DNA from: Thalia democratica
Lineage: Eukaryota
Assembly (NCBI GenBank): GCA_965202585.1
Contig: OZ241830.1
Location: 74,214,001-74,278,000 of the forward strand
Length of the DNA: 64,000 nt
Direction of reading: 5' to 3'
In this document: piece after piece, positions 380 through 20,541 of the stretch
Layout of the letters: the number at the start of each line of letters is the position of its first letter
Numbering within the stretch: the first letter of the stretch is position 1
Translations under genes and position numbers: made by a program
Notes under the pieces: generated by a model
Database searches by the model: none
What the model was told of the DNA's origin: nothing
The model's input: the letters and a program-made list of their open reading frames with translations, nothing else

Positions 380-1522
380 CTGATGAGTATTAGACCTTCG
401 GACAAGTTTTCAACGAGCATCACCTCACACAAGCTCCATATCAGCTCCATGGTCTTGTACAAGTCGGCTCCCTTTTCATCTCCTTCCTTACTTGCCTCCA
501 AATAGCAGCACCTCAGTATTGATCTGTACTTCTTGCTGCTCTGAATCATCACCTGTGCCATTGGTAAAGCATAAATATATATTTTCTAAACAAATTTTTA
601 AAAACTAAACAAGCAGATTTAGTTGGCACTGTTTTTAGAGCACTTTTAGTCAAATGTTATTGCCTAAACTGGAAAAATAAAACTAAACAAAGTTGATTTG
701 TTAAAAAAAGAAAATCAAAATTGATTCATGTTGTTTTTTTGTACACCTTTTAGTAAAAAAATACTTAGTTGTATTCAACTAACAGTCTCAATTGTTAATA
801 AAAGCTTAGTTAGTGCATGCATGTTACATTTAATAAACTATTGTAAGTAGAACAACTAGTTAACTTTTATTTGTTTCAATTAGGTACTTTTAAAATACAC
901 TAATCATCACCTCACTGTATGACAAGTCGTTCCCTAATAATACAAAATTAAATGTGAACAGACAAAGTTAGCACTTTTTTTCAGAGTGACCACAGTCAAA
1001 CATTTTCTTTATTCATACATATAGTTATTTGCCTTAACTAAAAAAGAATGCTCAATTTACTGGGATGAAAGAGCTTATTAAATATTTTCAATATTTTATT
1101 TTTGCTTGAAAAGGTCACAATTTTTTGCCACCAAAACCGGTCGCGAATAAAACATATAATTTGCATAAATTTATTCATTCTAGTTTTTCAGAGTGACCAC
1201 AGTCAAACATTTTATCAATTTATACATAAAATATCTCAACCATCACCTCTGTGTAAGAAGAGTCGTTCATGTCAATCCTCTTCATCTGCTTGTGCACAAT
1301 GTGTGACTGGTGCACCAGTTTCCTGGCAATCGGGTCAATCAGCTCCTGGTTCCACGTGACAAAGTGCAGTTTCGATGGTTTCTCTGAAGTTTCAGTTTCA
1401 CCGGTTGGCGCAAGGTAGGCGGCTATCTCGTAAGCAGGGCTCAGTTTTGCAAAGAGAGCTTTGCCACGGCACAAATCGTCCTTTATGTTTATTGTTTCCG
1501 AGTTCAGTTTGCTTATGTCCAT
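380..1522 (-). CDS. NUP85: Nucleoporin Nup85, 5' part (exon 1 1522-1247, exon 2 552-380; gene continues beyond the left edge)
   Basis: Exon 1 (276 nt, ends TYE|gtgatg) joins exon 2 after a cacag acceptor in phase 0. The product includes MIQSSKKYRSILRCC...MELIWSLCEVMLVE, which I recognise as matching vertebrate NUP85 LVRVSKNYRSVIRAC...MELIWNLCEILFIE. Exon 2 ends AG|gtgata. Confidence 0.9.
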
Positions 1523-1718
1523 TTTTAATTATTATCTGATGAGAAAATAGTTATTAAATTTTAGTTGTATTATGGCTGTTTGTAATTTATTCAGTGTCTT
1601 TTTACTTTTTTTTGTTCATTTTGTAAGGAAAATCCTATTTTGTTAAACTAAAATTCATCAACACTATAACCAAAATAAAGTTTTACGCCAGTTTTATCAT
1701 TAAATTTATTACAATTAA

Positions 1719-2364
1719 CGGCATAGGAGGGTTAACACCCTTTTTTGGTTTTAAATCTTATTTTATATAGTTCTTATTAAGCTAAAGATTTAAAAAATTA
1801 AAACAATTTTTGAGATATAGCCGGTCAAAGTCGGAGGCAACTATAGGATCCTTATAGGAAGCACAAACTAAAACAGCAAATAACTAGAAATCACTAAAAC
1901 TCTATCACCTTCTACGTTTTTTGAGATAACTACCTAAAATTTTCAGGAAATTTTCCTTGCAATATTTAAAAATTCTGTCAGAACAGAATTTAAAAAAAAA
2001 ATTTAATAAAAAAGCTAAAAAAAACTGTTTTTTTTTTGTTTTTTTTTATATAAAATTTTATTTTTTTTAAAACTCTTTCCTACAGATTTTTTTAAGAATA
2101 TTAAGGAACATTTCCTAAAAGTTTGAGGTAGTTATCTCAAAAAAAGGAGGAGAAAATATATTTTTAGTGAAATAGTCTATTTTTGCTATTTTAGTTTGCG
2201 CCTCCCATAAGGAACCTATTGTTGCCTCCAACTTTGACCAGCTACATCTCAAAAATTATTTTAATTTTTAAAATCTGTAAAAAGCATCTTGTAGCTTAAT
2301 AAAAACTATATAAAATAAGATCAAAAACCAAAAAATGGTGTTTACCCCCAATCCCTCTATGCCC
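1719..2364. mobile_element. Non-autonomous, near-palindromic MITE with TTAA-type target (Kolobok/piggyBac-like), copy 1
   Basis: Long imperfect inverted arms, e.g. ggcatagg...aacaccc / ggtgttt...ctatgcc and ccggtcaaagtcggaggcaac / gttgcctccaactttgaccag. Flanked by ttaa and ttat. A related copy lies at 61275-61888. GG...CC termini with a TTAA target fit Kolobok, but the family call is tentative. Confidence 0.7.
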
Positions 2365-3553
2365 TTATAGCAATAAAAAAGAATGTTTTTAAACTGAAAG
2401 GATTTAACTTATATATTAGTCAATTATAAGCAATTTGAAATTAAACTTCAATCATTTTATTGACAGTTTAAATACTAATAAAAACTTTTCAGCAAGTATA
2501 TGATAAACTTATCACCTTACATAGTTCTTTTTTTTTAATTTTTACCAATTTATATACTGTAGACGGTATCAATTTACAACTTGTAAAAAATAAATTTAAC
2601 TGTATTCTTATTGAAAGATTTCCAAAGTTTTTCAGTGGCATTATCCAAATACAAAAACTTAACTAGGGTTATAACATTGATATAATCAAACAGTATAATT
2701 AAGAAAACTTTTAATTGTAAATAATTTCAAAAGTTAAGAAATATACCCTGAGTTTCTAAAAACAAAAACATCTTCAAACTATTCCAGGTTGCTTTGAGTT
2801 CAAAACTGAATACTTATATTATTTTTTAGGAACATAAGAAGTGTTATTTTTGTAATAAAATAGTGTTGATGTTATGTAAAATTCTTGAGAAAAAAAAATT
2901 ATATTTAATGGCTATTAATCTAATAAAATAAGAGCAACTCTCTAACATAAATTTAATTTCATCTAAAACCAAACCCATTTTAGAACAAAAGATAAACAGT
3001 GTAAAGACAAAAAAAGTTTATAATAAATAAAATACAAAGCCTCACAGCTATAATTAATGAAATGGGTGAAGAAAATATTTGAAGTCCTTATAAACTTTTA
3101 CTATTAACTGTTATGAATTAAATCAAAAAGTTTTTTATTTCATTTATTGAAATTAATTTCAGCACATTTAACAGTCTTCTACTTTTATTTTTATGTATAT
3201 GATCTTTTTAAAACTATTGAATTTAATATTTTAGGTTCATTTATAAAAACTGTTTATGTCATCTAACTTAATATTGACCACAACACTACTATAGTAATCT
3301 TTAAATAAGAATACAAGTAAAAAATATTACAGAACTAAACTATCAATGATTTGACTTTAAGTTTAAAAAAACTTTCAAACATCAAAAAAATTGATTATTA
3401 GTTTAAAAATAAGTAACAAAAAAAATTAAAATAGTCTTTATATTAACACTGAAGGTGTTCAGTTATGTTTACTTGGTACAACTAATTTTCATTGCTGGGC
3501 AGATCTTCAGAAAGAAAATAATAAATAAATATATATTACTTCTTTTCATATTG

Positions 3554-3579
3554 TATATATATATATATATATATATATA
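3554..3579. repeat. (TA)n microsatellite (others at ~4211-4228, 9379-9418, 41881-41908)
   Basis: Directly visible TA dinucleotide runs. Confidence 0.95.
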
Positions 3580-4142
3580 GATTAATTTGTAGTAGTTATA
3601 AATGATAAAACAATAAGTATTTTTAAGTATTAGGACTAAAACCAAATAAAAAATTTAATCATTAACAACAATATCAAACAAAAATTAAAAAGGCAAAACG
3701 AAACTTAAATAAAAAAAACTATATAACAATAAAATAAAATTCAAAGTAATATTATTTAAAATGAGGGTAATAGAGCTAAGAGCTTTGAACTTAAATTTAA
3801 TGACTATTCTTTGTTGCATTCTGCAATGGCTATTCTTTGCAAACTGCATATTGTGTACACTTCTGGTTTTTTAGGGGCTTGCATGATATTTTGTACATGA
3901 TGGATTTTTTGATTTGCAGATATTACTGCAATCTAAATTGTTTCTCTGTCTATATATGCCAACAACTTTGTCTGGGTGAATTTTTAGACTTGAAGCTACT
4001 TGTTATGTAATTGTTGTGAAGTATGTGGATGGATAGAGAGGCTTTATGTAGGTGCTGATTATAAGGTTAAGATACACAAAAAATAAATATTTAAAACAAC
4101 TACTTCAGCATCAAAGGCTTCTTCATCCAATTAATTAAAACA

Positions 4143-4184
4143 CTTGGCTGAAGAAGTGTTTGATGCTGAAACAGTTGTTCCAAG
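4143..4184 (+). ncRNA. Candidate minimal type I hammerhead ribozyme (CUGAAGA variant)
   Basis: CTTGG-CTGAAGA-AGTG(tttga)TGCT-GAA-ACA(gt)TGT-T-CCAAG. Stem I is CTTGG/CCAAG, the core nucleotides are present, stem II is weak (two G-U pairs) and the cleavage triplet is GUU. A degenerate inverted copy lies at 4093-4131. Confidence 0.45.
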
Positions 4185-4248
4185 CAAAAGTTTAATATTT
4201 TGTATATCTTATATATATATATATATATCAGATATACAAAATTTATAA

Positions 4249-4344
4249 CAGTGGTCCATTTTAGGTTGTAAAAACTTTATGATGAATATGTATATATATA
4301 TACATATTCATCATAAAGTTTTTACAACCTAAAATGGACCACTG
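4249..4344. repeat. Perfect 96-bp palindrome centred on (TA)6
   Basis: cagtggtccattttaggttgtaaaaactttatgatgaatatg-(ta)6-catattcatcataaagtttttacaacctaaaatggaccactg; the arms are exact reverse complements. Confidence 0.97.
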
Positions 4345-4767
4345 CTATCAGAAGCATAACCCAATAACAACAAGAACTAATGATAAAAGAGTGACCTGAT
4401 ATTGACAAAAAATACTCTCTGAGTTTAACATCGCATGATCAAAACCTTGTGGCTGACACATTTACAAAAAAGAAATATTTTTAAATTTTGCCATTAAACA
4501 TATTATAATACCAACCCAATTTGACCTAATTATATTATTTGGTTTTTTATTATAATATTTATTATGTCAGTATTTACAGACTTAATTAGTATTAGATAAA
4601 AAATCCTTAACTTCAATTTATTTGTTGTTAAAAAGGTTAACTATTGTATCAAAGTTTTATAAAATTTTGTTAGTTGTTTTCTATCAGAATTAATATACAT
4701 ATGTTATTTGTTAAGTAACTAATAAATAAGAATATGTTATACTTTGGCTAAATTTTATTAACTATTT

Positions 4768-4869
4768 GTCCTGGACAAGAAGTTAAAAGGTATCTGTGGT
4801 ATACGACTCAATAAGCAAAAGGTTCTTCGTGCACCAGGTCCTAAAACTAAATATGTTGAGCACTTTTAT
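4768..4869 (+). mobile_element. Dispersed SINE-like element, copy 1
   Basis: Shares gtcctggacaag..gttaaaaggt..gtggtgtacgactcgataaccgaaaggttctttgtgcaccaggtcc with copies at 7604, 21952, 41771, 45934 and ~47400. Confidence 0.75.
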
Positions 4870-7603
4870 ATTTTCCAATAAACTATAATCATCTTTAACT
4901 AAAATTGAATGTTAGTACTTTGAATGAAATACTAATATGGACTTTTCACTGTTCAAACTTTAAAAATACTTACGAAAAATCAGGGATGGCTTAAGGCTTA
5001 TTTTCTAGACTCTGTGTCTGTGCTACCTAGGAAAAATAACTCAAAACTATCTATTCTTTTAATCAAAAACTTTAGAAAAAAACTACTTTTTGTTCTTAAC
5101 ATTTTAATAAATAGTGAGTTTATAATTTTTTTAGCATTTAAAATTGATGAATGAGAGCATACTAAGAAAGTACAATACAACTTCTAAAACAACTTTTTCT
5201 AATTTTAGTTTTAAAATTTATTATGATTTCAAAATCATTTTTGTTTGGTATAAATGCAGTTGTAATACATTTATATGGTATACTGACATTACATACAAAT
5301 ACTAAAAGCTATCACGTTCACAATTACAATTTTCAATAATATATATTTAACTAACTGCAATTAATAAAATTAAACGATAGTTTTATTAAACTTTGTATGC
5401 ATCAATCTTAACAAACGATTAGTTTTTGCTTACTCAGTATTTAAGAAAAATCAATGCAATAAGCTAAAAGACTGGCTTTGCATTTAAAAGTTTTGATTTG
5501 AAACATTTAAAAAACAAAAGTCTTAGCATATTTCAAAATTTCAATTAGTTTAACATGCTTTTATAAGTAGTACTTAAAACTATGGGCATAAAAAAATTGT
5601 TAATATGTTGAATAATGTTTTAGTAATAAATTAGACATAATTATACATACGCTTTACTTATTATGGGCATAAAACTTTTGAAATGCTTGTTGTTCTAAGA
5701 ATATTTTAATATCAGAATCTATCATGCTTTTATTTATTTGTACGATTAGTTATTTAAAAGTAAATAAAACTAATGTTTTTAATGTATAGTAAATTAGTTT
5801 CTTACTAATTTAAACTTGTCAGTGTATATGATTAATTGACATTCAAGACAAGCTCCTTCTTAAAACTACATTTTACTTTATACTTTAAAGCTTTTAACAC
5901 ATTGGAAAAAACATACTTAAATAAAAAATAGCAAAAATTTGTAATCAAAAAAATAATATAATAGGTTATCAACTGATTTAATATAAAATAATGTTGGATG
6001 CTTAAAAGTTAAAAGAATATAAATAGCGTTGTATTTAGTTATGAATAATAAAAAATTTATGCCTTGGTTTTAAATATGTAAATATTTAAATTTAATCCTG
6101 ATACAAGTATATGACTCAAACTTTTTTTCGATTAATCTTAATAAACTAGAAATTGGTAATAGTACTAGGTTTTATCAATTACTTGAGCATTAACATAGTT
6201 GTACCTAAAATTAATTTCTTGTTAACAAAGTATTCTCCTAGAATATAGACTTTAAAGTTAAACAACTATGTATATGTTAGAAGTTTAACCTAAAAATTAT
6301 TTTTGAAAGAACTTATTTGTTTTTAGAACATAACATTTAAAAAAAGCAGATTTGCAAGCTTATAGTATAAAATATTTTACTTAAAGCCGTTGGTAAACAA
6401 AATGAATCTGGACATAACTTTTATAAATAAAATCTTTTCTAGATTATAATTTCGAATAAAAACACATTACATACTTATCAACCCACTTTTATACATGCTT
6501 TTAATGTTTACCCATGATGACTCAAACTTTACATAATTCAACTAATTCTAAAAACACACATGAGCTAAACTAGTTTTTTCATCCAAATTTCGTAAACTTT
6601 TACCCAGCTTTGTAAGTTAAAATTTGAGTTAAAAAACTATCCAGATGTTTTTTAAATAGTTTCTATGTAAAAAAATTAAAAATATGTTTTTATTAAAAAC
6701 TTTAAGCATTGCCATAAAAAGTAGTTTTTAAAGCACTAACATTGTAAAGTTATAACATTAGATATTATTGTCTCATTCTTAAAACTTATCTTAAAAACTT
6801 AAAACTTAGCTATGCATAATAGTTGTCTTTATAGTGAGCAAACTGTTTAACTTCATGTACAAAACACAGACTAAGTGTAGGATACGATTGGTAATCTTTA
6901 ATAAAACTAAACTTTACATTAACTTTATCTTTTTTTGTGGGAGTAACTTATATTTTTGTAAGGCGACCGAAGTGAATAAAGTTTTAAGGTTACATGTATT
7001 TACAATACATAAAACACCATAAAAATACGATGAGTTAGCAATTTAAAAAAAAGCATTTGAATACGCTGCAGACTTCAATTTGTTGATTTTCGGTGATGTA
7101 TTTATGAGAAACTAACATAAATAGTTTGCTTAATCTATACCATTTTAAATTAGTATAAAAATAATTTCTGATAAATTAGTAGATACCTCAATCTAGTTAA
7201 TTTGAATTATTGTTATGCTAAACTAAAAGCAACACACTAAAAAATTAGCTCAAGGATAAACTATTTTGTATTTAAACATAGAACAAATTATAAATCTGTT
7301 CTACACTTCTTGTTTTATTATTTTTCAAAAAATATAAAAATTGATATGTACAACATTACTTGTTTCTTCAAAAACTTATAACCTCTATATAAGTTAAACT
7401 AAAGTTATATATAATTTTTAGTTTTTATATTACTAAACAAGATTCATAGTACATTATTAAACACAAAATTCAGTTAATTTTCGTTTAGTTTTATTTTCTT
7501 TCATTTTTCTTTTCATTCAATTGATTTATTACTAAAGATTTAAATACTTGAATGATAAAAAACAAACTATGTGTATTATCCAGTAAGAAACTTTACAATC
7601 ATT

Positions 7604-7678
7604 TGTGGTGTACGACTCGATAACCAAAAGGTTTCTTTGTACACCAGGTCCTTAGACCAAACTTTTTGAGCACTTTTT
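7604..7678 (+). mobile_element. Dispersed SINE-like element, copy 2
   Basis: tgtggtgtacgactcgataaccaaaaggtttctttgtacaccaggtccttagacc...ttgagcac, homologous to the other copies. Confidence 0.75.
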
Positions 7679-7832
7679 TATCGTTTAATAAACAATATTA
7701 TAGATAAACTTTATCAACATGCTTAAGAAAAAAATTTGTTTGAATTTTTATTTTCGAAATAAGTTGTAAACGCTAAAGTAATAAAAAGTAAGAAAATAAA
7801 TAAGAAAGTAATATATCCGCACACTATTCATT

Positions 7833-9375
7833 TTATATACAGATAATTGATTCACTCAGTTCAGAATTATATTTCTTTTTAGTTGATAAAATTCGGGCTT
7901 TTACAAAATTTTCTTTATATCTATTGACATTTATTTGAAACACATCATCAGAAATTCTCGTTAAGTTTTCTGATATTTTTCCGTTCACCAGTATCTGGGG
8001 TTTCTGAAACATATATTTGTTTTTGGTGCGTTGTTTTTTAGCGTCTAACTCTAAAATATTTTGATTGCTTTGAAAGTGACTTCAAATACCTTTGTAGATA
8101 ATTAATTAAGTACTTCAAGAGAACAATTGAACAACTATAAAAGTTTTGCCTTCAAACTACCAACCCATACTTTTATGAGCACAGAAAATATAAAATATCA
8201 TACAAGTAAAATAACTTACAAAATATTTTTTTTTATATATGCTTGTAGAATAACTTTCAAAAAATACTTGTAATATTACTTACAAAATGATCGTAGGTAT
8301 CTATCACATCCACATTATCCGGAAACTTCAGTTTTATTTCGCACTTATCACCTAGCAACGATGCTGACGTCACAGTTGGAACTTCCGGTTTCAAACCGGA
8401 AGAACGAAAGAAATAGTCTCTATCTAATGGATTGTGACGATAAGCGAAAGGGTGGTTCCATTTTACCTGTATTTCAGTTTTTTCATATAAATGTTTAATA
8501 ATAACTTATTTGAAAATTTTTAAACAGAGCTAAAGCTAAATGTTTGGTTTTTTATTCAAAAGTAAACTTAACTTTAAATTAAGCTTAGACTTCATTGCAT
8601 ATAGCATACCATTTGCAACAAGTATATTTATGCGAATTTTAACGTACATACTATATAGTACACAGTAAACATTCAATTAATGCTTTATGACTATTTATTG
8701 ACATAAATAAAAGAAGAAAACATAAGATTTTATATAGATCATTTTAAAACCAAACTCACGTTCACTAAGTACTCGGTGTCCGGCCTGAACTTTTCGTTGG
8801 CGACGATCACGTTTCTGGTCGTGACCCCGTCGACGCGAACCGGCTCGGACCTGAACGGCCGGTTGACGTCGAGGAAGTAGAGCGTGACGTTGAAATTGGC
8901 GGGAAGGTTGACCCGGTCGAAGAACCTGAGGGCGAAGAAGGGGGTCGGGTGGATTTTCGTGATTTTGCTCGAAGAGCTTTTCACGTCGAATACTGAAATT
9001 GTATACAGCTGTGTTTCTTGAACATTAAATTAAAGCTGATTATCTTGATTATATATTTTTTTAAGTTAATACTGCTTAATTTGATTATCAGCATAATAAT
9101 ATTTTTTGTTATTAACAAATTTTATAATTAACCATTTTAAAATCAAATATATAACTAATGAACGGAATACACATTTTACAGTTGTGTTTCTTTGATAATG
9201 TTTGAAAGTGTTAAGGATATATTTTGTTTAAAAGTCAGTAATTTTCAATTTTTTTATTATAGAATAATTTTAGTTTATTAAAAGTTTATTTATTTATACA
9301 ATTAATAACTACTTACCTTCTATATCACAGCGACATCCACGCCCCACTAAAATATTATTTTTTTAGACTTTACTT

Positions 9376-9419
<44 letters not shown>

Positions 9420-10779
9420 TATGTTGTTGTTTGATTAAACTAATTCTATTTCTAATAATTATCAACTGTTTAATACATAAAAAACGTCAAGTGAAATCAC
9501 TCACAACAAGTAGGCTTTTTTCTTCTTCTGCTAACAAACTTGGCGTTCCAGTTTTGGCAAATTTCTCTGACAGTGTCAACGTGAAATTTGTATTTATGAA
9601 GTTTGCGGCTGAAATAGAATCTGCCAAGACCGTCAACATCTCCGAAATCATCAATGCCTGTGTTTGTTTTTATATTAAAAACAATAAAAAGTGGTGTTAG
9701 TTTATAAGTGCTACACTTTGTAATTTAGAATTTATACATGCATTTGTAAATTGAAAGTTACACGCTAATAAATATCACTTGTGACATTAGAAGTTACTTT
9801 CTGTAAAACTAAAAAAAACATCTAATGAAAGTGTAAAATTATGACCATATTAACAAAATATTTTACTTTACTTTTAATAAAGTAATCATGAACCATCTTA
9901 CCTTCAACATCAACAAACTTATGACTTTCACCATCAACTGAGCAGGTATAGTTGTCGTGGTTCATTGTTATTTCTGGTCTCACCTAAACAATTTTTTTTT
10001 GTTTTCTTTATGTTTTACTAACAATTACTATTGTTTTTCACAATGTTTTGTGATATCGAAATAGCAAACTAACAACTTTCAAAGAAGTAACAAGTGTATT
10101 CGTCTTGTGTTTGTATTTGCTAGCCACTTCAAAGTGAGGATAGCCTTCAACACTCAAACCGTTGAGCAGCCAAACGACATTTCTCCTGCTTGAAGTTGAA
10201 AACTTGCACACGAACGTCATTTTATCAGTTCCTTTTCTTTTCGCAGATATCAGCTTTGTCGCTTTGTCATCTACGTTTCATAGTTATTTTACTTAAACTT
10301 ATTAAATTTCAATTTTTATATGGTGAAAGTTGATTAAAAACTTATGCAATCGTTTCAAACTTAAAGCAAATTTATGGTTAGACATTGAGTATTGTTCAGA
10401 GATCGTTATTATTGCACAGCCAAACACAATTTACTTCTATTTTAGAACAGCCAAACAAAATCAATTCTATTTAAAATAATCTTCTAAAATTTTTGTTTTT
10501 TATTTTATTTAAATACAACTGTTTGAACACTGTACAAAAACAATTAACTTATTAGAAATAATTAAGATTTATGTAATTGATAAATACAGTTTTTTTTATT
10601 CAATAAACAAATACAAAACTTACAGTAAAAGTTATAAAATACAGTTTAAAGTTTAGGAAAAATGTAATATGACAATGATTATAAATACTAAAAAGTTATA
10701 TAATAAATCACAAACCTCCGTTAGCAGCAGCAAATACCATACAAGCTAAAAAAATAAGTGTTTTCTTCATGTTCATCAT
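7833..10779 (-). CDS. Uncharacterised secreted protein: signal peptide + Ig-like + Cys-rich/EGF-like + FN3-like domains (8 exons; terminal exon has an apparent 1-nt frameshift)
   Basis: Exons 10779-10716, 10270-10077, 9983-9902, 9657-9505, 9346-9317, 8992-8760 and 8466-8284 all have GT-AG ends and consistent phases. Signal peptide MMNMKKTLIFLACMVFAAANG; Ig pattern FVC..VVWLLNG..YTC; C-x14-C-x4-CRC; FN3-like RPDTEYLVNV. The last exon from 8089 stops at 8051 unless shifted by -1, which opens ~75 further codons to 7833. Confidence 0.75.
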
Positions 10780-13259
10780 CTATATTCTATTCTTGAAAAG
10801 TTTTTATCTCGTTTAACTTATCTCTACCTTATTAGCCAAAGTTTTATATGTGTCTACAAACAATTATTTAAGAGCACAGTATCAAATACATTTAAATGGT
10901 CATAAAAATTCACTTAATTAATAAAAGTATTGACTTGTTTTCAAAAGTAAGCAAACTGTCTAAGTTACAATGTTTTGTTATGTTAGAAACAATTTAAGTT
11001 TTGTTTTAACAAGTTAAAAATAGAGTTTTATTTAGAAAACTGGTACAATGTGTAAAAAATAATACAGTGTGTTTCAACTTTAAAAGGTTTTGATTAGAAT
11101 TAACAAAAGTAAACTATCACTTTCTGTTTCAAAATACTATTTTCAACGTTTGTTTTAAAACCTAAATTACTTAAAAAGTTTTTTTAGATTATTTATATTT
11201 ATATTGTTGGATAAAATTTTCAAAAACTTATAACAGAAACTTGCTCTAATGATAGTCAGTTTTTAAGGTTACTTGGCTTTATTCACAGCTGTTATTAACA
11301 ACTTAAATGTTAAACAATAAAGTGAATTTAACTAAATACTGTAGTTGGAAACAAACAGACTTAACTCTTATTAAAACAAAATGTTGTATGTTTTAAGTTA
11401 AAATTTTATTTTTTTGTCGTTAGTTCGTTTATAAAGTTACAAGTACTAAGTAGTTTAATTTCAAAAAAATCTTTACATAATTAAGTGGTTTCAATATTAT
11501 TTTAGACAATTTAAAACTAATCAAATTTAATTTTATAGTTGACTACAATAATATATGTTTGTCGTAAAGTTTTTTATCAACTAAAACTTTTAAAGTTTAA
11601 ACACTCAGTTAACGAAAAGTTTTTATTATACTTTTTCTACAAAATCATAAAAAGAACATAAAAAATTAGTCAAAATTCCATTAACAAAAGCTTACTTACA
11701 ACTATCAATAAATTATTTAAATACACACTTTGATGCTTTTAAATTATATTGCTTTATTCTATTTACAAACAACTAAGTTAAAACACAATAGAGTGTATTA
11801 ACAACATTAACTTTTTATAAGCTAATAAAACTTATAATAATTTCGATTAACTTTATCATGTCATTATACAATGTAAAACGTACATTGGAATAAGTATTAT
11901 GGATATCTTACTAAAAACTAACCATGTGCTCTCTTTATTTTAGATTAACTTTATCTATAAAACGCAATTAAACTTTGATTAAGATAAATTATTCTAAGCT
12001 ATGTAATTTAGTGAAAACTATTTTAAATATTCTTATATTATTTATATTTCTTAAAAGATTTATAGGCTTTGTAGCATAATAATGATTAAATGTTTAGCTA
12101 GCACAGCATACTTTTAAATTTTTACAGTGAAATCATTAAAACGTTACTTATAAATATATTCAAATCGCTACTTAAAAGTAATTTATTAACATACTAGTGT
12201 TCTCATTTTTTTTTTCAGTGATATTTGCTGTTTTCAGATCAAAGATTACTCAAAGTGCTATAAAACTTATGTCAAAATTAAGGCCTGCAACAACCTCACA
12301 GAATACATTAAGTTTGTTATGCATTTAATATTATACAACATAAAGTTTGTAGAAAATAATGAACGTTATTTGAAAACTGAAAACATTATTTCTTTTTTAA
12401 TTACTATTTTTTCTAAAACTTAAGGTCAGTTAAAGGGCAGTGTATGTGTACATAGAAGGTCATATATCTGAAACTTCTCAATAAAGTTAATAACTTAAAA
12501 GTTTTAATACTTAAAAGTTAAGTTGATTGATTCTTGTCCAAGAATTTAGTTAAATTAGCTAATTTAATAACTGCTGATTTAATTTCTATGACTAAGCAAG
12601 CAGTTTGTGGTTACCTCATAATTCTATATTTCTTTCAAACTTGATGTTATAATTCGTAGTTTTCACGCCCAGTAAATAAAAACATGTTTTATAATTTGTT
12701 TGCAAGCTTTTCCGGTTTTGCCGAGTAAGTTACATACCTTTGACACAGTCAAAGTAGCTGCTTTATGAAATTGATGAGACAGTGAATCGGTCGTGAATTA
12801 TTTGGATTTTAACTGTTTTATTTTCAAAGAAAACGAAAATTAAGAGAACTTAAAAAAAAAGGTCATGTTATTCTCGAAAATTATCTGTCCGATTACTAAA
12901 TATCATATTTACAGACATTGATCTATAAGACTACATAAGTTGCGTGAGTCCTGGCACATAGATGAGAAATTGTTGCACTGATTTTTGGTGACATCTAAAT
13001 ATGAAAAAAAGCTCCATAAAACCATTAAAAAGACAGGGTTTGAATTTGTAGTCATTGAAAAAGCCAAGCCCTTTACCAGCCCACTGTGTTAGTATTGGTT
13101 AGTATGTAAATTGATATACCGCTTTACAGCAGCTTTAAAATTAATGTTTTTAGTATGATAATGTACTGTATGGCATAAACATTTCCAAAATATTTTAGCA
13201 TATAATTCTATTAGTGAAGTTAAAGCTTGTTGTCAAATTGCTTACGTCACCAAACTACA

Positions 13260-13382
13260 ACGAAGTACTGAAGCAACCGTTTGTGGGTAAAGTTGAAAAA
13301 ATGACACAGTTAAATCATTCACAGCCCAACGTCTCAGACATTTTTTCAACTTTACCCACAAACGGTCGCTTCAGTACTTCGT
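13260..13382. repeat. 44-bp inverted repeat (arms 13260-13303 and 13339-13382, 1 mismatch, 35-nt spacer) just upstream of the hammerhead
   Basis: acgaagtactgaagcaaccgtttgtgggtaaagttgaaaaaatg versus cattttttcaactttacccacaaacggtcgcttcagtacttcgt. Confidence 0.95.
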
Positions 13383-13424
13383 ACTTAAGCCCGCTTGTTT
13401 AAGATCACAATAGCGGTTTCTCGC

Positions 13425-13478
13425 GACTATTCCTGCCTGATGAGTCCTAATAAGGACGAAACCGGTCGTAGGATTGTC
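13425..13478 (+). ncRNA. Type I hammerhead ribozyme with intact core and palindromic stem III (Penelope-like element type)
   Basis: Stem I TCCTGC/GTAGGA (extended by gactat/ttgtc); core CTGATGA 13437-13443; stem II GTCC-TAATAA-GGAC; GAA; stem III ACCGGT; GUC cleavage after C13467. All conserved core positions are present. Confidence 0.88.
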
Positions 13479-13984
13479 TTGGATGCTGTTGTTGTTGATC
13501 TTGCGGTAAAGTTCATTGTTTATTATTGTTTTTTGTCACTAAACTAGACAGGTTTAATTAAATACGTAGTGTTCATTGATCTGCAAACAACAAAAAAAGT
13601 TGTTTCAAACTATTTCAAGAAATGTTAATACTTAAATATTTTTTGTAAAATAAGGAGGGTTGAAATTTTTTTTTACTTCGTGTCAACTAATTCTAAAGTG
13701 CATAAAATAAGAACAGTATTCCTATGTTGACCGACTTCGTTGCATTGCTTCATTAACATTCAGTTTTTGAGGATATATTCAATTGATTCAATTGATTAGT
13801 TTTATTAAAGCTGTTTCAATTTTACTATACTTAATATTTCTTAACCTTAACCAAACGAGTACTATTGTTCTGACTAGCCTAACAGTCTAACAGTTTTATT
13901 AAAAATCACTCAACCGTATCGGTAAGAAATAGCATGTGTATTAAGCGGTCATACAAATTCAACCAACACATTGAAGATTTCCGC

Positions 13985-14480
13985 AGGCCCGCCTAATCAG
14001 TCCCGCAGTCCTAATCAGGACGAAGCGGTCTCAGTTTACCGAAAGTCTAATGATCGAATTGGTATGATCAAACCTTGTAAACTTGAACTTGTCTCACGAC
14101 ATATAAAAGTCCAGGCTTTGGTTCTGTAAACTTTCGCCAATGTTTTTTTTAATCGTATTCAAAACGAACATACCAGATGTCTTGCCTAGTAGACAACGTA
14201 TTGAACGTTGCACGGCAAAAGACAATGCTGACGTCACTGACCAATGCCAGCAAATGGTTGCTCTATGATTGCATTTATAAACCGTTTGTAGATTGCAGAC
14301 TGCTAGCTTTTCGGTCGTGACTGACTGATGAGTCCTAATCAGGACAAAATTGGTCTCAGTCTACCAAAAGCTTGTTTCTGATGATCGAAATGGTACGATC
14401 AACCTTTATGTTAAACTTGAGCTTGTCTTACGTCCAGATCCAGGCTTCTGCTCTGCTGACTTTCACCGGTGTTTTATTTT
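13985..14480 (+). mobile_element. Two diverged tandem copies of a Penelope-like pseudo-LTR with degenerate hammerheads
   Basis: Units at ~13985-14140 and ~14315-14480 share gtcctaatcaggac(g/a)aa..ggtctcagt(c/t)tacc..tgatcgaa(t/a)tggta(t/c)gatcaa..aaacttga(a/g)cttgtct. The second has CTGATGA and stem I gactga/tcagtc but G12>A; the first lacks CTGATGA. Confidence 0.65.
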
Positions 14481-17400
14481 GATTTTATGAATGTTTGTGA
14501 AAAATGATGAATACATTATTTTTACTAATTATAAAGCACATATTTTACAACAAGAACAAAACCCTGTAGAGTATTTTAGAAACAAAGTCCAAATTGTTTA
14601 ATAATCTGTTTCTATCATATATGATTCTCACCTACTCAATTATAAGTCTGTTAGTATTTGTATGTGCACAGTTTTGAATCTTAGATATTAAATAAAAGCT
14701 GATCAACTTTTGAATTTTTTTATTTTACTATGAAATATAAAGATATTTTAACTCAAATAATACCATCACTATATTAGCATAGTTTGAAAATGTTTGAATA
14801 AACAAGCAACAGGTAAGATGATAAAAATTACTAAATTTTTGTATCATAATATTTTTTTAGTTTAAAAACACATTTGAAGTAGCTTTACAGTATCTTTTCA
14901 GTGTTGTTTTACTATTTAAAGCAAATTTTAAGTTCAATTTTGTACTAAAATTTGACCCAAAATTTTTTTTTCAAAAACCTGGAACAAATTAAAAAAAAAA
15001 GCTTGGGCAACCCTGGTGTTAACTATGTGTGTCAGTTTTTCCATAATACAACTCAATCTTTCAATTAATAAAAAAATCACTACAATAAACTTGTGCTCAA
15101 TAAGTTGTTAAAAGTAAGAATGATATACCGTTTTTAGTGAAAAGTAAGATTTCAATGTAGTTTTATGTGTAGTATCCAATTTTAACATAATTATATGTGC
15201 AGTAATCTGCTTCAATATAACTCTTTTATATCAAGCTCAACCATATTTTAAAATATATGATTAAACATTTATATTAGAGAACATTGTTGAGTAGGAACAT
15301 TGATTAAGTTATTTAAAAATGTAAGTTATTTTGTTAAGGAACACATGTTTCACTTGTTTCCATTTATTTTAAAATGTTGAATATTATAAAATCAGTCAAT
15401 CAGAAAGCAAGTTGATCTTATGCAAGTTTTCATTTCTATGATGCAGCTATATAAACCAGCCACAGAGAGTGTGTAGAGATTTTAGTCAAGACCTTCTAGA
15501 AGTAATTCCAGTACTGAATTTAGTTACTATTATATTGTATATTGTTAAGCTTTTTGAAAATAGTTTTTACTGCTTATATGATTTATTGATTTGAATTCCA
15601 AGTAGTCAAATCTTAAATCAATTATACCTTCTTAAAGGATACTCCTGTTAAATTTAATTCTTGTGTAAAAGTTTTGACCACATTTAAAATGTTTTTTTTA
15701 GTGTGATGTTCTTTATACATTTGTTAATGTTTGCAATTGTTCTTTAATACAATATTTTCATTTATATCATGTTTAGTTTTATATAGAGCAGCCCTAAGTA
15801 CTATTTAGTATCAGCATTTAGTACAAATTAATATAAATTTAATAATGGTTTTTAGTGTGGTTGTATACTACATTACAACCATACAAGTTTAATAAATAAG
15901 TAACTTACATCTATTGGTTACACTAGAAATACTGAAAATAATTTTACGGTTCTGAATTATCAGAAAATTACTGAACATAATACTTGACAAAGTTCTTAAA
16001 AATTTTTTTAAAGTATTTTATATCATTTTAAGCAGCTGTGTTTTTTCTCAATCAAAGTGAAAGCAAATCTAAAATTTTTTATCAAAAATATCAGCATTTC
16101 GGCTGTTTTGCATTGTTTATTTTAGTATTTATGTTACTTTTCAGACGTGAGATTGGCAACCCTTAGTTTTTGTAGCAAATTAATTAAAACAAACTTAAAT
16201 TTCATAGAGACTACCTAATCAAATATGGAAAAAACTACTTCCGAAAACAGTTATGATATAACTCTTGAAAATTGTCAGAATGAAAAAGACGATCAGAAGA
16301 ATAATAAATATAAAAATTCAACTCAAAATTTGCTTAGCTCTGCAATAGAAACTCAAAGTTTTGTTAGTTTTTTAAAAACGAAAGTGAAAAAAAAAAGAAA
16401 AACTTTTGCAAATACACATTGATGAAAATGTAACAGGTTTGTTTAAAAGCTTTTGTAAATAAATAAATTTTGTATAAATTATTTTAGTAAAAACAAAAGC
16501 GCAATATAACACATTAAACTGATAAGTTCTATTTGTTTAAAAAGCAGATACGTATCACTCCAAGCAAAACATTAAGTTTTATCTAAAATATTCGTTTTAC
16601 TGACCTTTAAAAATAGACAAAATCCTCAGTCAGTTTAGCTTAACAAAAACATAGATCAGGCATGTTTAAAACTGACTTTGTAAGCTCTATTCCGTTAGCA
16701 CTTTTTATTCATTTTTAGAAATATATATTAGAATTCCTTGATATGAAAAGTAACTAAAATGAAAATTATTATATGGTTTCAGTTAACACATACTTTCTTA
16801 CTTTTATAAAACGCTAGATTTTTGTTTGTGTTTACAGTCTTATTTTTCTTTGTTAAAATAGAAACAGCCGTGTTTAAAATTAAGTTTGTAGTACAATTGA
16901 GTTATTTCCTAATTCTTTATAAAGTCGCATTGTTACCTTTTCAATATCTAATGCATTTAAAAAACCGTTTTTAATTTGTATCTTGAATGCTAAAATTATG
17001 TTTTTGGTTCGTCTACCTACTACAAAAATATCAACCTGGTGACCCATGTACTTTCTAATAATTTAATTTGTACTTAATGTGTACAGATGACATTTTCTAA
17101 CAAACGATTTTTACCGACCATAATTTTTTTTTGCTGTTGCAAAATTTTGTTTTTTTGGGTTTGTCCTCAAAAGTTATCTGATTGCAAAAAAATATTTATC
17201 ATATTATCATACTTACTTTGGCATGCCCATATGCAAAGTTTTCAACATTTTTATGTTTTAAATTTAATAATTCCAGTGTGAATTGGTTGTATTTGTTTCG
17301 TTTCATTGGTTAAGCTTGTGTTGATGTAAAATATCAGATGATTTGTTTTTTATACTTCAACTCGTGCTTGTTATTTTATATGTATACTTGTTTTATACAT

Positions 17401-17627
17401 AAAATTGTTCGTTTAGTAAGTTGTTTTATTTTATAATTGGTACATAGTGCAATATAAATGGGTGGCCATTTAACCTGGAATCTTGGAAAAGTCTAGAATT
17501 AGAAAAATTTAAACTAAAAATTAAAAACTTCGAGTTTTAAAGAGTTTTCATATGTTAAGTAGAAAACTACGATATGACACAAAATTCTTTCATAAGATAA
17601 ATTTTATTGTCATCATCAAAGTTTAAC

Positions 17628-17690
17628 ACAAAGGTTGATCGTAACAGTTCGATCATCAGGACAAAACCGGTCTCAGTCTACCGACCGCTT
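17628..17690. mobile_element. Fragment of the same Penelope-like pLTR with an internal inversion junction
   Basis: aaaggttgatcgtaacagttcgatcatcag is the reverse complement of the ctgatgatcgaa..gtacgatcaaccttt motif at ~14378-14407. It is fused to the forward 3' half of the hammerhead (ggacaaaaccggtctcagtctacc). Confidence 0.65.
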
Positions 17691-19138
17691 GTGGTCACCT
17701 GAAAATTATTTAAAATAAAAGTTTTATTGTAACGTCATAATGGTTTTATAATAAAAAACTTATTTTGAACAACCATTTATAATTTAAGATGCTTACGTTG
17801 GTAATAAATGATGAATCAATGATCATCATTTGGTTTTAATAAAAAAGTAAAACCGTTCCTAAAGTTTACCAATGTTGCCTAATAAAGTTTAAGTACTCTG
17901 TGTTGTCTGTAAAAAACAATTTATGTTAGTCAAACTTTTATTAATTTAAATCACTAAGCAGTTGAAAATTTGGTCAAAATAAAAGCAATTTACTAAAGAT
18001 TTTTGCTATAATATTTTCATAACAATGTTATATAACATTTATAATATTTATTTTTTAATTTTAATTTTTTTTTTCATTAAAAGCTTATTATTTTAAGTAC
18101 TCGACCACGACGTATAAATATTAAATTTCAAAAACTTTATTTAAACTTTCATTTAACTGATAATTTTTAATAATTCTTAATTTTTAATTTTGTTGTTGAA
18201 GTTTAATGTTAAAACCGTCGCATTATTAAATATAAAACTTCAACTGTTATAAAATAAATTAATCTGAGCTAAATAACTTAATTTAAAAAATATTTGATAT
18301 AATGGAAGCGAAATCAAGCCTAAAGAAAAATTGGAATGGACACTATAGTAATATTTAGAAGTTGTTAATAATTAAATTATAACTATTTATCAACTGTTAT
18401 TAACTTGTAAACATTTATTTTAGTTCTAAACAACGTTTTTAATAGCAGATGTTAGCTTTTCACAGAGTATTACTTTTAACATTATTTAAAAAATTCTCCA
18501 CTGCACGAACTTTATACATCAGTTATTTCAGTTCGAAATTTTTTGCAATTTTAATTTTTGTACACAGATTAAGTAAACATAATTAACTTTGTTTCACATA
18601 ATTAATCTATAAAAAGGATAACGTTAACGTTCTAAAGACTTTAGAAAACTATTTCAAATAAAGAACTACAAACATTAATGTTGCACCCTTAAAAAATTAA
18701 AACAAGTCTTTTTTATTGTCTATTTACATGATAATACAAGATTTAAATTTATAATTGTCTATAACTGTTTTTATTATCAAACTTGCTTTAATTTACTGTT
18801 TTTAACTTACAAACGTTCTAATACTTATTTTACCCTTTTAGCTTATGTTGATACATTAACAGTTTAACTAATAATATACTTTTCAATATCTCTAAGGAAA
18901 AAAAAAACTGAATTTTTAAATTGAGTTTTTATCTAACAATAAAAATGCTTATTAGAATCGGTCAAACTTAATTTACAGCTGTTTCTGTGTATATATAAAA
19001 GTACTTCAACTAAATTTAATCAGTAATTACTCTTGATTATTTGATTTGTAATGTTACTAATTTTGAGACAAACGTTTACTAAACTTTTTGTAAAGTAACT
19101 GGAGATTATTTAGTAACAAATATCATGTTTATTTTTAG

Positions 19139-20541
19139 GAACTAGAAAAGAAGAAAAAATAAAATGCATTCAAAATTTGAAAGCAAACAGCGTTTTGTTG
19201 GTAGGGGCTGATGAGGAAACAAATCTCGAGCTCGTCCGAAACAAGTTCAACGTTCAAAACGCGTCTGCTTACTACCAAATAGCTCATTGTTTCCGCCTCG
19301 CTGATCTTGCCAGGCGATCTTTGAGCTACATTGAGCGTTGGTTTGCCAAGGCCAGTGAAAGCAGAAACTTTTTAGAGCTGAACTTCGAGCTGGTGAAAAA
19401 GATAACTGCCAGTTCCAATTTGCTTGTCGACTCCGAGTTGGAAGTGTTGTTTGCAGCTGATGGTTGGCTAAGCTACAAGTACGATGAAAGGAGAAAATTC
19501 GCAAACCGCATTTTACTCAAAGTTCGTCTTCATTTGCTTTCCGAACACAGTCTGAGCAGCATTCTGAGCAGCAACCTTTCTTTCACCAAAGTCGACAGCT
19601 GCGTTGAGACACTCGGAAAAACTTCACGAAACAAGAAAGCTTTTTCTCAAAACAAGGCGATCCGCTCGAACAGATTCTGCAGCCGACACGACTTGAACGT
19701 GATTGTGAGCGGCGGGGGCGCGAATGCCGCCAAAAGAGTCGTGGAAGTCGACTGCGAAAGCATGAGAGCCGCGAACGACTTGACCCCGCCTCGGCCCGGT
19801 TCCTTTTCGCAGTTTTTGGAGCGCATCGCGACCCGCCACGCGCACAAATCGGTTTATTGCAAGGGGGAGCTGTACATCGTGGCGGACGACACATCGGAAG
19901 TGCACCAGCCGCACTACGTCGTGAAGTATTCAATTGCCGCCGGAACGTGGAGCGGCGTTTGCGCCATTCCCGAAGCAAGGGCAATGTATTGCGTTTGCGC
20001 CTTAATGGGGCAGATATTCGTGTTCGGAGGCGTGAACGGCAACAGCAACTTCCTCCGCTCTTTCGTGAAGTTCGACGTGAAAGCAACCGCTGGGAGGCGG
20101 GAGAGATGGGCGAGAAGAGAGTCAGCGCGGCCTGCGCCGTCTTCCGGGGAAGGGTGGTGGTCTCGGGCGGCTTCAACCTCGACCGCTGCCCCGCCACGCG
20201 CCACGTCCAAGCCTACGACCCCCTTTCCCGGTCGTGGGCGCCGATGCCGGACATGATGGAGGCGAGGCGCGATCACGCCATGGTAGCCGCCGGCATCAAG
20301 CTGTTCGTGGTGGGCGGGATGCGGCGGTCGTGCGAGGTTTTCGACGGATATGCGAGGACGGCGCGATAAACGAAACGCTCGTCGCCGCGTTCGCCGTCGG
20401 GAGCTCGACCCTCGCCGCCGTCGCCACGAAGTCGCTCCTGCGTTATGACGTGACAAAGAACGAGTGGTGCGAATGGGAATGCGAGGCCGTCGCGGGAAGG
20501 AAGGGTTTCGCTTGCGCGCTTTCGCCGAAAACTCGGTTTTA
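19139..20541 (+). pseudogene. BACK-kelch (KLHL-like, BTB-less) gene with two -1 frameshifts; pseudogene or consensus errors
   Basis: Acceptor tttttag at 19137-19138. BACK motif IERWF..FLELNFELVKKI..SELEVLFAADGWL. Kelch blades continue in ORF 19857-20369 (SNRW..VVVSGG..YDP..W..M) and ORF 20234-20542 (YDVTKNEW), with frame switches at ~20083 and ~20349. A possible first exon lies at 18302-18347 (phase-compatible, low confidence). Confidence 0.75.

Follow-up and report, generated by a model that had tools for sequence, protein, structure and literature searches.

Metazoan non-LTR retrozymes are low-GC tandem repeats of 150-450 bp that contain no ORF and carry a type I hammerhead ribozyme (Cervera & de la Pena 2020, PMC7229834). 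Their insertions show duplications longer than 4 bp, and extensive self-pairing that spares the ribozyme is predicted for their monomers; monomeric cleavage is efficient in invertebrate retrozymes, and dimer dependence is found in amphibians (PMC7229834). In the usual metazoan type I hammerhead, helix I has 6 bp, helix II has 4 bp, and helix III is palindromic and very short; this design is active as a dimer in tandem transcripts (PMC4209133). In insertions of Penelope-like elements (PLEs), the 3' end is constant and the 5' end variable, the duplications differ in length, a truncated copy lies alongside in inverted orientation, and an extension is present on one side only (PMC8557442). Co-occurrence and pseudo-LTR similarity have earlier led to the proposal that PLEs mobilise retrozymes; the way in which Penelope-type enzymes copy RNAs that bear a ribozyme, and the question of a circular template, are both left open in PMC7229834 and in bioRxiv 10.64898/2026.07.22.740005.

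The 64-kb stretch of DNA analysed here (the window) contains, at positions 13425-13478, a hammerhead that is real, but that lies in an unremarkable, truncated copy of a class of element already known, described in 2020. The earlier note on this sequence had claimed a complete type I core, and each of the elements that it listed is present:

13437-13467, + strand: conserved core of the type I hammerhead, 31 nt
13437-13443, + strand: C3 to A9, CUGAUGA, read from the sequence
13444-13447 with 13454-13457, + strand: helix II, GUCC/GGAC, 4 bp (G10.1 is 13444 and C11.1 is 13457)
13448-13453, + strand: helix II loop UAAUAA, 6 nt
13458-13460, + strand: G12, A13 and A14
13461-13466, + strand: helix III, the palindrome ACCGGU (A15.1 is 13461 and U16.1 is 13466)
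13467, + strand: C17, with predicted cleavage between 13467 and 13468
13431-13436 with 13468-13473, + strand: inner 6 bp of helix I, UCCUGC/GUAGGA
13425-13427 with 13476-13478, + strand: GAC/GUC pairing of helix I, reached past the internal loop UAU/UU
13421-13483, + strand: hammerhead with extended helix I, pairing outward to about 13421/13483; 34.7 bits with the HH9 model

Helices I and II are canonical, and helix I is open, as befits type I. The 31-nt core and a generic hammerhead pattern each have 0 matches in 100 shuffles of the window, and the motif is far beyond chance. A second regular-expression hit at 19208-19265 lies within a BACK/Kelch ORF, lacks convincing helices and was treated as a chance match. 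HH9 in the strict sense is an intronic ribozyme that is conserved in amniotes as a single copy, and is thus no repeat. Among the Rfam models, Hammerhead_HH9 (RF02275) scores best, with a match in the core, helices I and II and the ACC/GGU stem of helix III; the alignment extends end to end over all 77 positions at 34.7 bits (E = 8e-7 for 1 kb searched and 5e-5 for the whole window). The loop-3 positions of the model are deleted in this alignment, and it is because loop 3 is missing that the score falls under the gathering score of 52 bits. The match is accordingly visible under E-value thresholds only: a default Rfam scan of the window, at gathering thresholds, has no hits. The best hammerhead variants of the genome reach 41.2 bits.

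The design of the window hammerhead is not unusual for metazoan type I ribozymes (cf. PMC4209133). It shares with the minimal hammerheads of PLE pseudo-LTRs the palindromic 15.2-16.2 pairs, the predicted dimeric action and the link to PLE-type insertion (PMC4209133). The metazoan PLE ribozymes, however, have atypical helices, with a large bulged helix II, whereas helices I and II are canonical here, and the window hammerhead resides in a non-coding repeat rather than in a PLE.

Within one molecule, the window hammerhead has no closed helix III, given that ACCGGU leaves no viable intramolecular loop, and in the lowest-energy fold of a 72-nt monomeric segment the core is mispaired. Co-folding of two copies yields a double hammerhead, in which each copy forms its own helices I and II and the two are joined by a helix III of 6 bp, at -42.5 kcal/mol versus 2 x -19.2 kcal/mol for the monomers; metazoan hammerheads are known, and accepted, to be arranged in this way. 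By this folding model, helix III can form only between two ribozymes. The palindromic stem III and dimeric action proposed in the earlier note are thus borne out as predictions, and the accompanying general statement that such hammerheads act as dimers agrees with both PMC4209133 and PMC7229834. Because of its loop-less helix III, this ribozyme is well suited to tests of hammerhead cleavage that depends strictly on dimers.

An alignment of 20 distinct genomic variants has 95.8% of its cells paired, compared with 21-43% in slid controls, and at three pairs of helix I both partners are substituted (21 cells). The variants split into two lineages in which helix I differs at most positions and is still paired; the two family consensuses agree completely in the 31-nt core, helix II and helix III, and the 20 variants agree there almost completely. 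This covariation backs helices I and II, but the variants are related sequences, so it is to be taken as support rather than proof. At some loci (e.g. L071, L072, L076 and L079), hammerheads of the same lineages have a true helix III hairpin or another helix III; in L079, helix III is ACC-GAAUAA-GGU and the core is dead. Comparison of the sequences suggests that the loop-less ACCGGU may have arisen through loss of loop 3.

The genome-wide search for copies that had been proposed as a check places the motif in an abundant repeat with tandem arrays. The exact 44-nt ribozyme is present in 603 copies in the 802-Mb eukaryotic assembly (~27% GC), with 0 copies of the reversed control, and a search with 13230-13560 returned more than 200 scored matches (~2,000 candidates at first look). 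When units were cut from cleavage site to cleavage site, a 327-bp unit was obtained; of the 39 unit records, which come from overlapping loci, 24 are one and the same 327-bp sequence, and these 24 represent several chromosomes. This unit (hereafter, family A) has 42% GC and no Pfam-scale ORF, the longest open frame in a trimer being 94 aa. The arrays consist of tandem repeats within the 150-450 bp range, each with a type I hammerhead and with several units per arm; they have no terminal repeats beyond the units themselves, are non-coding, and lack LTRs, PBS and PPT. Folded as a circle, the 327-nt unit has a predicted energy of -98.9 kcal/mol, compared with -72.7 +/- 5.0 kcal/mol for shuffles; the circular fold retains helices I and II.

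Family A fits the published definition of metazoan non-LTR retrozymes: the size class, low GC, absence of an ORF, type I hammerhead, duplications longer than 4 bp and self-paired monomer are all alike. It differs from the elements of PMC7229834 in that helix III has no loop, so that an absolute dependence on dimers would be expected, and in the head-to-head arrays and two alternative termini described below, which do not appear in that paper (the word 'inverted' is absent from it); nor does PMC7229834 mention tunicates. The satellite-2 type hammerheads of newt and axolotl (Forster 1988 as cited in PMC4209133; PMC7229834) share with family A the 6-bp helix I and 4-bp helix II, as well as a very short palindromic helix III, double-hammerhead activity (in family A, a prediction) and a unit of ~330 nt. 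There is, however, no sequence relation between the two outside the core, and the amphibian helix III retains a small loop.

Family A occurs on all large chromosomes, as tandem arrays, head-to-head arrays and 5'-truncated solo copies. We mapped 23 loci onto the 327-bp unit. The commonest layout consists of two head-to-head arms with the ribozymes facing outwards; within arrays, the units are in direct order. The inner junctions vary from locus to locus and the outer ends are fixed, at unit positions 57-59 (~20 ends) or 107-117 (~11 ends), usually one of each per insertion. Solo copies are 5'-truncated at differing unit positions. Target-site duplications of 5-14 bp, that is, longer than 4 bp, were found at ~17 of the 20 other loci listed. 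Two apparent solos, L016 and L023, are truncated at unit 114-116 and continue into 11-20 nt of the unit 104-114 region in the opposite orientation. These two are head-to-head insertions with a minute second arm, and other 'solos' may be misclassified in the same way.

The copy of family A in the window spans 13260-13534 and has the following parts:

13246-13259, no strand: left target-site duplication GTCACCAAACTACA, matching 13535-13548 at 12 of 14 positions and abutting the first unit-homologous base
13260-13342, - strand: inverted arm, the reverse complement of unit 160-242, 83 nt, 96.4% identity by BLAST, without ribozyme
13339-13467, + strand: direct arm, unit 199-327, up to the predicted cleavage site, 99.2% identity
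13468-13526, + strand: unit 1-59, ending at the usual 'short' 3' terminus, 98.3% identity
13527-13534, + strand: eight extra bases TGTTTTTT between the element end and the right duplication, outside the unit sequence
13535-13548, no strand: right target-site duplication GTCACTAAACTAGA

This copy is a 275-bp fragment, composed of the 83-nt inverted arm and a direct part of 188 nt, which holds the only ribozyme. Its arms form an inverted repeat of 44 nt (98% complementary, 35-nt spacer) that includes 13339-13382. The 3' terminus is a common one, most other insertions likewise terminating at unit 57-59, and the left end at unit 242 is not among the usual ends of family A. The duplication is imperfect (12 of 14 bp), and the eight extra bases at 13527-13534 may be an untemplated addition or filler. 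The copy would have originated from two cDNAs, in a variant of the insertion process outlined below for the family: one, with priming at the normal end (unit 59), would have broken off at 199, and the other would have been primed at a non-canonical internal site (242) and extended to 160; these two cDNAs, primed on the same or on neighbouring units, would then have been joined head to head.

No second ribozyme is found 327 nt away from the window hammerhead. With one ribozyme and no partner at this distance, there can be no dimer in cis and no release of a unit-length or circular RNA, and the window copy itself, a single truncated unit, is not a tandem-repeat retrozyme. The earlier note's inference of a non-autonomous, retrozyme-like element thus holds in the form of an ORF-less 327-bp retrozyme-type repeat family, and the absence of a reverse transcriptase (RT) ORF that it reported extends to any RT or GIY-YIG sequence near the window copy; the proposed formation of dimers and circular RNA fails for this copy, with its single 5'-truncated ribozyme. 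We consider it very probable that the ribozyme sits in a 275-bp insertion that was dead on arrival and that derives from a non-autonomous retroelement, one of the metazoan non-LTR retrozymes. The window copy, which has a single ribozyme and lacks both a neighbour and a known promoter, is most likely inert; it could cleave solely if transcribed and paired in trans with another transcript of the family.

In a second retrozyme family (family B), the unit measures 336 bp and shares 46% overall identity with that of family A; the 31-nt core is identical, and helix I is different and fully covarying. The outer ends of family B lie at ~52-60 and ~131-134 and follow the same rule of one short and one long terminus. 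Two remnants of this family are present in the window:

14031-14483, + strand: old family B copy, 1.4 units, ~82% identity, ending at the 'long' terminus (unit 133)
17619-17705: head-to-head scrap of family B, the reverse complement of unit ~23-63 followed by the 3' half of the hammerhead AGGACAAAACCGGTC and ~35 nt

The hammerhead of the first of these (14325-14355) is dead, G12 being replaced by A at 14346 and helix III reading AUUGGU, and the scrap has no CUGAUGA box. Both retrozyme families bear the insertion scars typical of PLEs, namely, 5' truncation, an inverted truncated neighbour, a one-sided tail and a duplication of variable length.

Neither the unit nor the vicinity of the window copy contains an ORF with RT and GIY-YIG, and such ORFs exist elsewhere in the genome. 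GIY-YIG matches led to a PLE family with an 857-aa ORF, represented by the following copy and by further copies at L043 and L045-L047:

L044:4420-7449 (C9:31604000-31613999): copy of the resident PLE

The 857-aa ORF contains YIDD and C-terminal GIY..YIG motifs, both read by eye; Pfam detects only the endonuclease in it and does not recognise an RT domain, and a PDB sequence search came back blank. We call this element a PLE because of these motifs, the C-terminal endonuclease layout and the insertion architecture. Its copies are 94-99% identical, often arranged head to head and also in partial tandem, and are flanked by duplications of 8-13 bp. At one end only, a tail extends 70 nt past the common 3' end, after which, in tandem, the next copy begins; this one-sided tail has its counterpart in the short and long ends of the retrozymes. 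In the PLE copies sampled, which represent only ~3 families, so that a partner could have been overlooked, there is no hammerhead, as judged by Rfam on the first loci and by a custom hammerhead scan, nor any BLAST similarity to the 327-bp unit (E > 0.2); the one family whose ends were traced likewise has no clear sequence in common with the unit. Because neither sequence nor hammerhead is shared, we infer the partnership between the PLE and the retrozymes solely from insertion scars and architecture.

The insertion grammar is common to families A and B and the hammerhead-less PLE: all three have head-to-head arms and duplications of ~5-14 bp, and on a tandem template the gap between the short and long outer ends is ~54 nt (A), ~78 nt (B) or 70 nt (PLE). 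The architecture of 5' truncation, partial tandems, an inverted neighbour and a one-sided tail is that described for PLEs by Craig et al. 2021 (PMC8557442), with the difference that the published tail is 30-40 bp long. A scheme can be outlined in which the tandem arrays of family A, which are observed, would be transcribed as multimers, as in the published class, and the hammerheads of neighbouring units would, according to the predicted fold, pair via ACCGGU into a double hammerhead, each cleaving after C17. The 327-nt monomers thus released could, by analogy with the same class, be circularised by a host RNA ligase. Judging by the scars, this RNA would be copied back into DNA where a chromosome carries staggered nicks, through the reverse transcriptase and the GIY-YIG endonuclease of a PLE; the duplications of variable length, the 5' truncation, the multimeric arrays, the head-to-head arms and the pair of alternative outer ends would all result from this. 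The shared grammar can be read as structural evidence that the PLE machinery mobilises the retrozymes in trans, without a shared sequence or ribozyme, that the multi-unit arrays come into being during insertion, on a multimeric or circular RNA template, and not by later unequal crossing-over, and that the PLE 'tail' results simply from reading on into the following unit when the template is tandem or circular; the chances that this extended reading is correct appear to us about even. The head-to-head arms and paired termini, which are in neither of the two papers that propose PLE mobilisation, are a modest addition at the level of the family.

The run search yielded marine metatranscriptomes and one oligo-dT library with ~1/10 of the sampled words, as well as DNA-type runs from two organisms; all these data are assembled contigs, in which read ends and circle junctions are not represented. 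In the interval 12900-14700, contigs from three RNA libraries (two studies) cover the two retrozyme stretches, with zero coverage of the flanks. One RNA contig derives from other copies, because it runs into the consensus unit and not into the window flanks. In a DNA-type run, the repeat bins stand ~10^4 over the single-copy flanks, so traces of DNA could give the same picture in the RNA libraries. In the same interval, the DNA-type run also contains two haplotypes of flank contigs (~62 of 112 depth) that differ at several sites around 13185-13216 and 13584-13592.

Near-identical units in tandem arrays would also fit ordinary satellite DNA, which would spread and be homogenised by unequal crossing-over, ectopic recombination and extrachromosomal circles, with the hammerhead as a passenger, and local amplification has been put forward for retrozyme arrays in a 2026 preprint as well. 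Such an origin is nevertheless very improbable, considering that hundreds of short insertions are dispersed, that each of them is flanked by a duplication of its own, with the outer end fixed and the inner truncation variable, and that two families with so little overall identity have an identical 31-nt core and a compensation for every helix I change. Slightly less probable still is a DNA fold-back or hairpin transposon, in which the head-to-head arrays would be terminal inverted repeats and not by-products of reverse transcription. Most of the multi-unit insertions are indeed inverted pairs, and the window copy has its 44-nt inverted repeat; yet the arms are unequal in length, the inner junction differs at each locus, the outer ends differ from one another (59 vs 113), and many copies are purely direct or are 5'-truncated solos. 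Moreover, the coding PLE shows the same layout, which is a published trait of PLEs (PMC8557442).

The lowest probability goes, in equal measure, to two further explanations. The ribozyme could be a fragment of an autonomous PLE, that is, a pseudo-LTR ribozyme, given that type I hammerheads with a palindromic helix III are common in PLE pseudo-LTRs (PMC4209133), but the 327-bp unit contains no long ORF, no RT or GIY-YIG lies nearby, and the sampled PLE copies have neither a hammerhead nor similarity to the unit. It could also be a ribozyme that the host has domesticated to process one of its transcripts at this locus: the core of the window copy is intact, and conserved intronic hammerheads (HH9) are found in amniotes. 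Against this, the window copy is 96-99% identical to a young repeat family and has a single, dimer-dependent ribozyme, no transcript covering the flanks is present in the RNA libraries examined, and there is no recognisable gene around it. Under the preferred reading, a truncated insertion of a non-LTR retrozyme, the locus is a probably inert scrap of an abundant repeat that annotators should mask and not call a functional ribozyme gene. The genome as a whole is a clean natural data set, with hundreds of young, near-identical insertions whose ends are readable; from these insertions it could be worked out how RNAs with a ribozyme are copied by Penelope-type enzymes, and the idea of a circular template could be tested on them.

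The nearest recognisable coding sequence to the element is the BACK/Kelch ORF, ~5.7 kb downstream:

19177-20369, + strand: BACK and Kelch-repeat coding sequence, in two overlapping frames, 19177-20256 and 19857-20369

The split between these frames could reflect an intron, a frameshift or a pseudogene, and no BTB exon was seen in the + strand open frames of 9000-19300. A Pfam search of ten ORFs (seven of them within 1102-17278), together with a scan of the + strand frames of 9000-19300, detected no exon around the element, and the longer ORFs scanned upstream of it (1102-10220) contain nothing recognisable. The position between two genes given in the earlier note is therefore unproven, and the element may be intronic or intergenic. 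At 4243-4348, there is a near-perfect, AT-rich palindromic hairpin of ~90-100 nt, to which several microRNA precursor models match equally on both strands (mir-3688, 57.7 bits with a cut-off of 84 bits; mir-9, 51.5 bits with a cut-off of 58.6 bits). The symmetry and the AT-rich loop of this hairpin suggest a palindromic repeat rather than a microRNA gene.
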